NCBI GenBank assembly: GCA_002269645.1
Contig: NIVC01002471.1
Location: 107,271-171,270, forward strand
Length of the DNA stretch: 64,000 nt
Reading direction: 5' to 3'
Source of the DNA: Macrostomum lignano
Lineage: Eukaryota
Shown: in pieces, positions 19,101 through 25,100 of the stretch
How the letters are laid out: every line of letters begins with the position of its first letter
Position numbering within the stretch: position 1 is the stretch's first letter
The notes under the pieces: generated by a model
The model's database searches: none
What the model saw: only the letters and a program-made list of their open reading frames with translations
Told to the model about the DNA's origin: nothing
Made by a program: the position numbers and the translations under genes

Positions 19101-22100
19101 CGAATCCGGAGCCCAGGATGCCCTGTAAATGTGACGGGCCTCAGCTTATATTGCGGTAGTTTTGCAGTCTACTAGACAGACAGTCACATAGCAACCAGTA
19201 TAGAAATCCTAAACCACAACTCAAAAAAATCAACTCTGTTCTCCTCTTTGGCTTCTGTGCTCTGTTCACCGGAATTTTAATTTTACATACAAGCATTGAG
19301 TGTTTTTTTAATTTAGGAGTTAAACAGAAAAAATCAACAAGCATTGTGAAGTTTCCAACACAAAGTACTCCCGACAGAAAGTAAAAATTAGCATGAATGA
19401 TCATGCAAAGCCGAATAGCTGACAACGAATTTGGTTTTTGCAAGAAAGAATTAAGGAAGCCAAGCAATTAGCATGCAGTTCTAGAAAGGTAAAGTGCAGC
19501 TTATATGTGTCCAACCGTGCAGACAGGGCAAAGGTGCCAGGTGCCAGACTACAAGAATCAAAACAGCTCAAGCACGCGCGCGCGAGCAACGAGAGACTTA
19601 CTGCCGGTAGAGCAAAGAATGAGATGCCAGCAATTGAGCAAAATGATGCAACAATTTTTCCACTCCACGTTTTAGGGGTGACATCGCCGTAGCCAACTGT
19701 GCACAATGTGACCTGCAAGGGCACAAGAAATCGTGAGGGAACAGTAGCCAGTCAGCCCAGCACCCCCCCCCCCCCCCGAGTATGTTGGCACCCCCCCCCG
19801 AGTATGTTGACACCTGTTGGACACCTGACCTGGATTGACCAATAGTTAGCATGGTTGCTTGTCGGAGCCTTCATCAAACAGTCGTCAATTTTTATGTGAA
19901 TTTGCAAGTTAATTTAAAACAAAATAATTGTCCCCAACCTGAGCCGGCATCTCATTCTTTGCGTCTCGGTTAAATCAATGAAATTAGATTTCGGCTAAAC
20001 ATACGCAACTGCACCACCAGCCAGGAATCCAAGCTACCAGGAGAACCATAAGTTTGATGCTTAAAATGGGCCCTCCTGACTTTAACGGTTTGAAACCTTG
20101 TTTTTAAAAACGTGTTTAATTTACTGAATCCAATTCTCTGAGCTCTTTTCCATTGCACAGTCACAATATTGGCCAGGGAAATCTCTGCATGCACATCATA
20201 TCGTTTAGAATTTGTTTGAATTTCCTGCAAATTCCTGCAAGACTTAATGAAGCTCTTTAATAATTGGGTTCCCGACCAATCAGGCCACGTCTGTAAAGGC
20301 CGGTTCACGTTACCGCCATTAGCTCCGCGGGCCAAACATTGCTCAAATCAATTTTAAAATGGGTCTGAACTACCTGTATGTTGATTACAAGCGTACAGTT
20401 AGGACTGCTCTTCACTGGTAGATGGTAGCTTCATGAGATCGGACCCTGAATACCTCTGCGATAGCTCCTAATGAACTACGCTACTACAAAAAACAACAAC
20501 AGACAGGCAAATCTACGAACTTCTTTGAATTGACCTTTGACTCTCAAACTAATTTCCTCCGTAAGGCAAAGCGCTTTAAATGCAGTAACGTTTTGTAAAA
20601 AAGTAAAGAATTCAGTAATAGCAACTGATAACTTTTCGATTATTGACTGCTACATAAAGAGTCGCCAAGCCGACCTGATCGAAGGTGGATACAGGTGGCC
20701 TCAGTTCCAACTCACCGGAGGCAGTGCATAGAAGCTGATGATGGTGAGGCAGGCGGCAGCGCAGGCCAGCTTGCCCAGGTAAGAAACTGGCACTGTGTGG
20801 CCGTAGCCAACTGTGCACAGAGTTGTCTGCCGGGTTGGGAGCACCCGAGTCAATTTGGGCACAGTGAACAATTATTACAGCGAGGATTCAGACGAATATA
20901 CAAAATTGCACTTGTTGAAAAGTAATTTCTACGCTGGGCTTTGCTGCTGAAGCTCGCTACGTACATGCAGGCCGTCGCTACTTTGTTGTTGGTTTACACC
21001 AAATCAAAATTCAAACACCACTTCTGTTTCCCAGCTTTGAGCCAATCGGGTAGTTAGTTTACTAAAGTCACTTTAAGGATCACTAAAGTCCTTAGTAGCA
21101 GACACTGCCCCCAGGCCACAGTGGATCACCAAAGTGAAATATAGAGGGCTTATATATGTACAAGTTATTATAAAGTTAAAATTAAGTAAACTATGAAGGT
21201 GATATAGAATTTTTTGGTCCTATGTCCTTTGGTCCTGGGTCCCACGTAAATATTGAACCAACTTTCAATAGACACCAATTTCAGCCATAGAAGCAGTTTT
21301 CTTCCAAGCTATTGACCGAAAGGAGGAAGAAGTATTCAAAGTAACTTTGCATGGCGATTAGCCAGGAAGAAAATCCATTTTTTAACGATGACCTCATGGC
21401 CAACAAGCTTAACCTTCTTGTCGCCATCGGCACGCCATGGAGAAGCTGTGTCCAACAAAAACCACCAGGAGAGGCAGCATAGAAAGCGCAGAAGCCGACC
21501 CAGTGAATCGTCAGTCAGACAACCAGATTTGGAGACTGACTCCGAGAGATTCAGATTCTACTTGCTCAAGCTATCGGATGTTATGCCTGACTCATTCCTA
21601 ATTCGCCTGCCGGGCATCCGCATCGTCTCTAGCCAGGACCCCATGCTCAGGTGCGCTTAGCTTTGCTCGTTTCACTGGTTGCCTGGTTTAACTTGCAGCA
21701 ACTGATATTGGATTTTGTAAAGCTTTAAGGGATTAAAGTAATAAAGAGGTTTGCTTTTGATATTGCAGCTTCCAGGTCTTTCGCAAATGCTCTAAAGATT
21801 CAACAGATTCAAAGAGTCAGAATATTGTCGTATACATGCGTGCATTGAATTCTTGATTAGCATATTCCAGGTGACCAGGTGGCAAGACCTGATGCGGCAT
21901 GTATGTTATACTATGTTTGCGAGCCAAACAGTTTATGTGGGTTGGGCTCGTGCGGTTGTCAAATCCAAATACTTTAGCGTATTTTAGCGAACCCAAATTC
22001 GAACGATTTGGACTGGTAGAACCTGTCGAAATGCCTCTGCAAATAAAACTCGCAGCAACCAATCAGGACCTAACTGCCCACTGACTTCAGCGAGACCATG

Positions 22101-25100
22101 CGCCTGGTGCTTCAGTTTGGCAGGCGTTTCAGTCGCGACTACGTCAGGGTGCACGTGCTCTGCCAGCTGGTGCACCTGCTGGTGTGCGAGGACAGCTTCG
22201 GCGGCAGGTACTTCGGCTCCGTGGACAGCGCCACCGTGGCCGATCACTATTGGACTGGAGTGCTGAGCGTGCAGCTGAGGCGAATCCACGGTCTGCCAGC
22301 TATTCTATGACATCTCGTACTTTTATAAGCTGCTATTGTATTAGATTTTAGCGCGTCTGTTTTTGTTAAAATTTAGTGAATATTCAACAAACTCCCCCAC
22401 TCGGGTATTTTAGTTAAATGCATACGGCAGCTAATTTCAATTCGAATCACTGCAGAGCATTTGTTCATTTTAACCGGAATACTGATTAATAATAACACGG
22501 ATGGACGGTGAGCACTCACCACTCCCCACCAGAGAGCGTCCGCGTAGTTACTGATTTGCGTGTCCTGCTCGTCCTTCTCAATCAGGTACATGACGAATGA
22601 GCTGAATATGAGTCCCAGGAAGCCTATGTACACAGTGGTGAACAACTCCTGCGGGGTCGAGGGTTCAAAAAAACCTTGCGCAACGTTCACCCACCTTAAG
22701 TCAATCGATCATAATCTATCACAATAATCAGTACCCGCAGGAATTACAGCAAGAGGTAAGCTACATAGTGTCTGTGTTTTTCTTTTGGATAAATAATGTT
22801 TTGGTTTCTTTTGAATTTTCAGCATCTGAATAAATTTTATTCGCAGGAGTATTTTATACACCTTGGCGCAACGCCTTCGGGGACATCGTCCAACAGCCGG
22901 CGCTGAGGCAGTTCGGCCCATTCCGCTGACTCCTGAGCACATGCAAGCGCCAATACTGTACGCAGGCGCGCACTCATACACACGCTCACTCGGGGTGTAC
23001 AGATGCCATGAGACCTGATTATTCTACCTGAGATCTTCCTCACATTAAGGGGGTTTGAATCGCACGACAATCTCAGGACAATTCTCATGCACAAGCCCCA
23101 AATGAATTTGGCCGCAGCTCGAATCGAGTCAGGAGTTGTGGCGCGAGAGTCAGACGAGTTCACCGCTGAGCTGCTCCGCCCCGTCATGATGGTGTACAGC
23201 ACTGTTGAAGCGGCAAATCATTTTTGTATCTCTATTGCTTCATCCAGCAAATGCAGGTATTTCTACTCAAAGACCCTAACGCTGATAGTGAATAACATAT
23301 TCGAAAATACCTGTCGATGCGCCCAGACCACCGAGGCCAGGAGCTTCCAGCTGCCGCCTCGCCGGTCCATGCGGATCATGCGCAGGATCTGGAAGAACCG
23401 CAGGCCGCGCAGCGCCGAGGCTGCGAACATCTGGCGATCGCTACCGAGTGCCAGGACAATGATGGAGGCCACGATGACAATGGAGTCTGTGGATTGTATA
23501 GGGAGGTTCTCACTTTATATTCCTTCATTTTGTCCCAAGGACCACTGGAACGTGGCAACTTATTGAAGATAGAGAATCTACATTTTAAGCACTTAATACG
23601 CGTTCTCTTGGATTCTGCTATTACGATAATGATGCATTCTGAACCAAGGTGGTTCCATAAGTTTATGGACTTGAATTCAGCAAAAGTCAGGAAAGAGTGC
23701 TACGTTCTGATAAAACGGCAGCTTCTAGTGGTCCTTGGAGCTCTGGCGTGAAGGTAGCGGAGATATTTAATTCTGTACACAACTTGAAACTGCCTGACCT
23801 GATTATTCTACCTGACATCTTCCTCACATCGAGTCTTAACGGTGCTCTGCGGAAACTTTTTCTATTCTGGGTTTGCAAAGAAGACTTAATCATCCGTGCA
23901 TTCTCAAAGACAAGTAACGAGTTCAGAACGTTGAGCAGAATCCGTGATGAACCAAAAAACTCAGCGCTCTCACCTCAGTCCGGAGCCGCTCCTGCATATT
24001 TAATTATGTCATTAGTCGAGTCTGCCGCAGAAAGCCCTTCTGCCCAGCTAATGGGACGAGGTCAGGAGCAGCCGCCCGGGATTAAATCCTGACAAGCACG
24101 CTCCCATTTACTTTCTCAAAAGCCGATACCCTGGAGAATACAGTTTTCAGCAAAGGCGGACTGGGGCCCCATTCTGTGGGCTGTTAGGTGCGTGTATAGG
24201 TGACGCTGTCTTCCAAGGAGTCACTCCAGTCATACTACGGATAAACTCGTCCCCACCGTGTTTGTGCACCGTGTACTTCAGTAGTGACGGGTGCTTAGTG
24301 ATGGACATCTTTATTTAACCAACTGTAAATGTGTTTAACTAAAGTGACAATTAAGGTCAGTTTTTTAACACCGTATCAAAATGGTTGCTGACACTCTTAA
24401 CTCTGGTAAATAAATGTTTCCTCTTGAAATTTGACGAATGTATATTAACTGGCTGAATGAGGCTGTACAAAACTTAATTTTTGATTAGTTCCTTGTGCAT
24501 TAGTCATGTTTCTGGGCATCCCATTTGATGCCTCCGTTCACTCCTTGGAATTCTTCATTTGATGCCTCTGTTCAGTCTTTGGAATTCTTCATTTGATGCC
24601 TCTGTTCACTCCTTGGAATTCTTCATTTGATGCCTCTGTTCAGTCTTTGGAATTCTTCATTTGATGCCTCTGTTCACTCCTTGGAATTCTTCATTTGATG
24701 CCTCTGTTCAGTCTTTGGAATTCTTCATTTGATGCCTCGGTTCACTCTTTGGAATTCTTCATTTGATGCCTCTGTTCACTCTTTGGAATTCTTCATTTGA
24801 TGCCTCTGTTCAGTCTTTGGAATTCTTCATTTGATGCCTCTGTTCACTCTTTGAAATTCTTCATTTGATGCCTCTGTTCACTCTTTGGAATTCTTCATTT
24901 GATGCCTCTGTTCAGTCTCTGGAATTCTTCATTTGATGCCTCTGTTCACTCTTTGGAATTCTTCATTTGATGCCTCTGTTCAGTCTCTGGAATTCTTCAT
25001 TTGATGCCTCTGTTCACTCTTTGGAATTCTTCATTTGATGCCTCTGTTCAGTCTCTGGAATTCTTCATTTGATGCCTCTGTTCACTCTTTGGAATTCTTC

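Follow-up and report, generated by a model that had tools for sequence, protein, structure and literature searches.

A candidate two-exon orphan gene on the antisense strand of a KCNQ intron in Macrostomum lignano

Genes that sit in the introns of other genes, on the opposite strand of the host, are a common arrangement in animal genomes. In this paper, we consider one candidate of this kind in Macrostomum lignano, found on a stretch of 64,000 nucleotides (assembly GCA_002269645.1, contig NIVC01002471.1, positions 107,271 to 171,270 of the forward strand) that we call the window and whose own coordinates are used for every position given below. On the plus strand of the window, an open reading frame (ORF) of 160 codons is divided between two exons (21388-21650 and 22091-22310); on the minus strand around it lies a gene of the KCNQ channel type, and the two-exon ORF falls within a single intron of that gene. 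Is the inner ORF a gene in its own right, does it encode a protein, and where does it end? An earlier reading of the DNA, which we refer to as the original prediction, gave it a third exon and a product of 181 aa, with the two genes interdigitated. We argue here for something simpler: a candidate protein-coding gene of two coding exons, nested rather than interdigitated, that had already been deposited without a function.

The Locus

The coding part of exon 1 (21388..21650, plus strand) opens with the ATG at 21388, contributes 87 codons and 2 nt, and matches residues 1-87 of the deposited protein PAA49957.1 exactly. Intron 1 (21651..22090, plus strand), 440 nt long and 42% GC, runs from CAG|GTGCGC to cttcag|C, and its splice sites are identical in three of three copies of the locus—the window and contigs NIVC01000696.1 and NIVC01003751.1, which are the three copies compared throughout. 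The coding part of exon 2, as annotated (22091..22310, plus strand), continues past 22290|22291, where the original prediction had placed a second splice donor, and reaches a TGA at 22308-22310, yielding a product of 160 aa.

The original prediction called this gene unrecognised, yet it was already known: it is an ordinary orphan gene, whose 160-aa product GenBank and UniProt list as uncharacterised (PAA49957.1 and PAA78285.1, hypothetical proteins BOX15_Mlig025467g1 and BOX15_Mlig031744g1; UniRef100_A0A267FWS1). The annotated coding sequence (CDS) spans 923 nt on NIVC01000696.1 and on NIVC01003751.1, corresponding to 21388-22310 of the window, and it was annotated independently on the two contigs, each time on the strand opposite to a KCNQ-type gene. 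The deposited protein and the earlier three-exon model share residues 1-154, the start codon, intron 1, and the antisense position in KCNQ; they part at 22290, where the deposited protein reads through to end in GLPAIL and the three-exon model splices to exon 3 instead. The DNA of the window is ~2% different from the two deposited contigs, with three synonymous changes in exon 1.

How was the deposited model obtained? The annotation of M. lignano was built from RNA sequencing (RNA-seq) reads by means of StringTie, TACO, and TBONE, with ORFs called by TransDecoder and transcript boundaries set from spliced-leader and poly(A) reads; the deposited set leaves out non-coding transcripts and those overlapping repeats, and where the two strands overlapped, the pipeline dropped the one with lower expression (PMC5730564). 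The junction between exons 1 and 2 (PMLS|ETMRL) is present exactly in PAA49957.1, and because that protein derives from RNA-seq, intron 1 has transcript support; intron 2 of the original prediction is unused in the transcript behind the CDS call. The ORF and its GT..AG intron are read directly on the plus strand, the exons of KCNQ on the minus strand, and the evidence for transcription of the ORF is the published RNA-seq-based annotation.

One might worry that the annotation itself is an artefact—that there is no independent plus-strand transcript and that the model was built from KCNQ pre-mRNA or from mis-stranded reads. The long intron in which the locus lies does belong to a gene that is expressed, and reads do multi-map between near-identical copies. 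But intron 1 has GT..AG ends only on the plus strand (on the KCNQ strand, they read CT..AC), so that any read spliced at these sites points to RNA from the plus strand; two contigs yielded the same model; the removal of the lower-expressed strand at overlaps (PMC5730564) also argues against such an origin; and the exon/intron contrast in GC and the codon periodicity described below are independent of the annotation. We regard an artefact as very improbable.

The whole annotated CDS (21388-22310) falls within one KCNQ intron, the one that separates the S5 exon (22520-22648) from pore exon A (20716-20826). That is, since the CDS reads on to its stop at 22308-22310, it lies in this intron in its entirety, and the gene as annotated is nested, not interdigitated with its host as had been claimed. 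The earlier placement of exons 1 and 2 in the intron just upstream of the alternative pore exon was right.

Two features just upstream of the CDS may bear on the 5′ end of the transcript. The ORF list contains an out-of-frame ATG at 21351, and 21 nt before the annotated ATG, there is an acceptor-like agccag|g (21361..21367, plus strand) that may accept a spliced leader or join to an exon further upstream. M. lignano makes frequent use of trans-splicing (PMC5730564), and a spliced leader received at this site could remove the upstream ATG.

Evidence for a Coding Gene

The evidence that the two-exon ORF is coding is, in our judgment from its sequence, fair and short of proof. Length is the first part of it: when the spliced sequence is shuffled with its dinucleotides preserved, a 160-codon ORF is rare, with p = 0.001 if only the exons are shuffled and p = 0.007 if a long 3′ untranslated region (UTR) is included. 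Composition is the second. Exons 1 and 2 are 52% and 64% GC, compared with 36-42% in the introns. In exon 2, the GC fractions at the first, second, and third codon positions (GC1/2/3) are 0.64/0.39/0.86, a contrast reached by 0 of 10,000 shuffles (p < 1e-4), and the third-position bias agrees with that of the bona fide exons of the window, for which GC3 is 0.69 in a small training set of 827 codons from the window, KCNQ exons included. With the codon table drawn from that set, the proposed frame has the best log-odds of the six in each exon, clearly so only in exon 2, and all intron segments score strongly negative. The GC3-biased codons of the original prediction are borne out, GC3 being 0.72 over its whole 181-aa model.

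A third part of the evidence comes from the copies. By BLAST, the window is 97-98% identical to NIVC01000696.1 and NIVC01003751.1 (both of assembly GCA_002269645.1) over alignable blocks of 6.4, 5.6, and 2.8 kb; between 20800 and 23308, it differs by 2.24% from the former and by 1.84% from the latter, the two contigs diverging from each other by 0.92%. With this identity to M. lignano contigs, an insect origin of the DNA was rejected. The karyotype of the line that was sequenced makes the assembly highly redundant (PMC5730564). Given that redundancy and the near-identity, we take the window to be a third copy of this locus, be it an allele or a homeologue. Among the three copies, exons 1 and 2 carry three substitutions (21582, 21598, and 21600), all in exon 1, all synonymous, and all in codons for V or L; exon 2 has none. 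With 23% synonymous sites, three of three synonymous has P = 0.012 if the changes are independent and P = 0.054 if the two in one Leu codon are counted as a single event. The conservation of intron 1 was also considered as a signal and dropped, since many nearby intronic bins are likewise unchanged.

A number of points weigh against a coding gene, and we set them out together. Exon 1 is nearly without codon periodicity (GC1/2/3 of 0.48/0.47/0.62), and its first half has none. The minus strand of exon 2 also has an ORF, of 101 aa. TransDecoder accepts every ORF that is long, and in a set of ~70,000 transcripts, some of this length would be expected by chance. The copies differ by only 1-2%, and the divergence over 16949-23308 is patchy, with many intronic bins of 200 nt showing zero changes, so that conservation has little power here. 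Neither identifier, Mlig025467 or Mlig031744, occurs in the searchable literature or in four sets of supplements. When 1.84 billion cluster representatives were searched exhaustively with phmmer, the annotated copy of the gene itself was recovered and no other homologue; no Pfam family matched the product at E ≤ 1; and the best match among PDB sequences had E = 0.44, none being significant. Finally, a single-sequence AlphaFold2 model of the product has a mean predicted local distance difference test (pLDDT) score of 37.6, for which reason we judged a fold search to be meaningless, and a deeper alignment is out of reach, as the proteins of the three copies are identical or nearly so.

The lack of homologues agrees with the original prediction, which could assign the product to no family. 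In a word-indexed search of 5.8 billion proteins, the 181-aa query found a single match, the 160-aa PAA49957.1/PAA78285.1, at 99% identity. This kind of search misses obvious matches—a query with the S4-S5-pore segment of the channel did not list the annotated 1052-aa KCNQ protein of M. lignano, and all of its matches were ≤202 aa—and its negatives are therefore less trustworthy than those of the exhaustive phmmer search.

Several of these points would sit comfortably with a different idea, in which the plus-strand RNA is a non-coding antisense transcript (an intronic long non-coding RNA or natural antisense of KCNQ), the 160-codon ORF is fortuitous and was called by TransDecoder, and any function is exerted through the RNA or through the act of transcription. 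Such a transcript would explain why the product is a complete orphan with no domain or fold and why the codon periodicity of exon 1 is weak; the 101-aa ORF opposite exon 2 would mean that this GC-rich stretch is stop-poor in general; and the low power of the three-copy comparison would leave room for it. Nevertheless, it has to contend with the length of the ORF (p = 0.001-0.007 against shuffles), with a three-base periodicity in exon 2 that is very strong and falls exactly in the frame of the ORF, with a plus frame that outscores all minus frames, and with three of three substitutions being synonymous. We think a non-coding transcript possible but unlikely.

What might the protein be? The N-terminal 50 residues are basic and rich in Ser and Arg, contain a motif resembling a nuclear localization signal (RKRRSR), and are probably disordered; a hydrophobic C-terminal region of ~100 residues is probably helical, a prediction of low confidence. 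The product is possibly a small nuclear protein, which is a guess from the basic motif only.

Two other kinds of element were looked for at the locus. In an Rfam scan of 20000-24000, nothing rose above sub-threshold noise (mir-449 scored 21 bits, where the gathering score is 60), and a scan for bacterial promoters and terminators, which is irrelevant for a eukaryote, gave nothing. An origin from a transposon or other repeat was rejected: neither the window nor the two contig loci contain a paralogue, and no repeats flank the ORF.

The Proposed Third Exon

In the original prediction, the gene continued from 22290 through a second intron (22291..22846, plus strand; ACG|GTCTGC to ttattcgcag|G) to a third exon (22847..22929, plus strand) of 27 codons and a stop, placing the KCNQ S5 exon inside intron 2. 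The arithmetic of that model is correct: the three segments join in matching phases into 546 nt without an internal stop, encoding 181 aa, with GT..AG ends at both gaps. Could a three-exon mRNA then be the main product of the gene or a minor isoform? Its GT..AG ends and open frame are kept in three of three copies; exon 3 is 59% GC, compared with 36-38% in the proposed intron; the frame of exon 3 outscores the other five on codon usage, if by a small margin and over only 26 codons; and the acceptor (ttttattcgcag|G) is decent.

There is also evidence on the other side. In both deposited models, the annotated CDS leaves the donor unused and reads on as far as the stop at 22310, and no 181-aa form occurs in the protein collections searched. 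The donor is weak, as can be read directly from its C at +3 and from its agreement with the U1 consensus at only ~4 of 9 positions. Of the 64 AGs in the 1 kb past the 22290|22291 donor, 20 (31%) keep the frame open in that phase for 27 codons or more, and the continuity of the frame over the second gap is no better than chance. Exon 3 has GC1/2/3 of 0.62/0.46/0.73, a periodicity short of significance (p = 0.16). In NIVC01000696.1, it carries 4 substitutions in 83 nt, a density that resembles the non-coding flanks, and two of these (Q to P and G to C) are replacements, the only two amino-acid changes of the 181-aa model among the three copies.

We therefore find intron 2 unsupported and a three-exon mRNA doubtful; exon 3 is possibly 3′ UTR, downstream sequence, or part of a minor isoform. 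Of the earlier statement that the frame continues across both introns, the part about the first gap stands, its junction being present in an RNA-seq-derived protein, and the part about the second is unsupported, as is the interdigitation of the two genes that depended on it. What survives of the original prediction is a separate, spliced ORF on the plus strand, antisense in KCNQ and of no known family, without its third exon.

There is also a candidate for the true end of the transcript. A motif scan found AATAAA at 22829..22834 (plus strand), 12 nt before the proposed acceptor of exon 3 and followed by CA at 22844-22845, a position that itself counts against the three-exon model. It is the sole canonical AATAAA on the plus strand from the annotated stop (22310) to 23400, and it would fit an unspliced 3′ UTR ending at ~22845, although its use is something that we infer. 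If the 3′ UTR does run to this signal, it would cover the KCNQ S5 exon in antisense, where the three-exon model has an intron around that exon.

The KCNQ Host and Its Pore Exons

Judged by domains and sequence similarity, the host is a KCNQ (Kv7) channel gene. Its product carries Pfam PF00520 (Ion_trans) and PF07885 (Ion_trans_2) on both contigs and PF03520 (KCNQ_channel) on NIVC01000696.1, and its S4-S5-pore segment shares 60-81% identity with proteins of the KQT family. The mapping, made by eye, covered the exons for S4, S5, and the pore. The S5 exon (22520..22648, minus strand; 129 nt) encodes ELFTT…ADALWWGV between an acceptor ccccgcag| and a donor |gtgagt, and these splice sites confirm the position and strand that the original prediction gave it. 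The S4 exon (23311..23472, minus strand) has its 3′ end at 23311 (CAG|gtatttt), 23472 being the limit of the ORF and not a mapped 5′ end. A C-terminal tail ORF (13123-14166, minus strand; 347 aa; 65% GC), Pro-rich and acidic, shows 95% identity, across 23% of its length, with a KCNQ_channel-domain (PF03520) fragment of M. lignano.

Downstream of the intron that holds the nested ORF are two alternative pore exons, where the original prediction had indicated an alternative pore exon: exon A (20716..20826, minus strand), which encodes TVGYGH between ag| and |gtgagt sites present in three of three copies, and exon B (19602..19712, minus strand), which encodes TVGYGD and has canonical splice sites in three of three copies. 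They are of equal length (111 nt each) and the same phase, and both are intact in all three copies; to go by its sequence, this tandem pair has the arrangement typical of mutually exclusive exons. Exon A has a His in place of the conserved Asp that follows GYG, whereas exon B keeps GYGD. A relative in the trematode Echinostoma caproni has sequence like that of exon A, but with the usual GYGD. This pair of pore exons, one of them with His for Asp, is, we think, more notable than the nested gene.

A direct repeat of 34 nt, 97% identical between its two copies (23012-23045 and 23796-23829), flanks the region of the S4 exon and may belong to a short dispersed intronic element.

Discussion

Our best explanation, to which we give a probability of roughly 0.55, is that the locus holds a lineage-restricted orphan gene encoding a protein of 160 aa in two coding exons (21388-21650 and 22091-22310), nested antisense in a KCNQ intron. 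On this explanation, the gene would be expressed from a transcript of its own, on the strand opposite KCNQ; the translation of that transcript, the localisation of its product, and the positions of its ends we infer.

How ordinary would such a gene be? Like other nested intronic genes, it has its whole annotated CDS in one intron of the host (22519 down to 20827), on the opposite strand. It would depart from simple nesting if its 3′ UTR reached the AATAAA at 22829, for then it and the S5 exon would form an exon-overlapping antisense pair. It also resembles taxonomically restricted and de novo genes, which it matches in its short ORF, its few exons, its basic and probably disordered N terminus, its lack of any detectable homologue, and its site in the non-coding DNA of another gene; unlike a de novo gene, however, it might instead be old and fast-evolving. 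Nested antisense genes being common and this one being already deposited, its significance is small. It has a modest value as a candidate for a taxon-restricted gene in an animal that serves as a model of regeneration and is open to transgenesis and RNA interference.

The influence of antisense transcription on pore-exon choice that the original prediction suggested is speculative. A more ambitious proposal can be imagined, in which the gene is young, possibly de novo, and its transcript lies antisense across the S5 exon (by a long 3′ UTR to ~22845 or by intron 2), biasing the choice between the GYGH and GYGD pore exons and so tuning the selectivity or conductance of the channel. An antisense transcript shown to affect the use of the pore exons would be an elegant example of ion-channel isoforms under antisense control. 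We consider the proposal as a whole a long shot.

Other Features of the Window

Elsewhere in the window, three other plus-strand ORFs look coding (3593-3952, 54950-55555, and 59941-60288) and were used as training for codon usage; among them are one with a signal peptide and a thioredoxin-like motif (FYADWCHFSQ) and two that resemble small single-pass membrane proteins with Pro/Gln-rich tails. The window also contains long tandem-repeat arrays, at 7399-7768, 24521-25296 (with a period of ~34 nt), 25767-26495, 27265-28479, 29272-29788, 30256-31060, 32160-33280 (with a period of ~46 nt), 35374-36001, and 39031-39929. These arrays give rise to long spurious ORFs and to differences in copy number between the window and NIVC01000696.1 and NIVC01003751.1, and their abundance is consistent with the repeat-rich genome of M. 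lignano.

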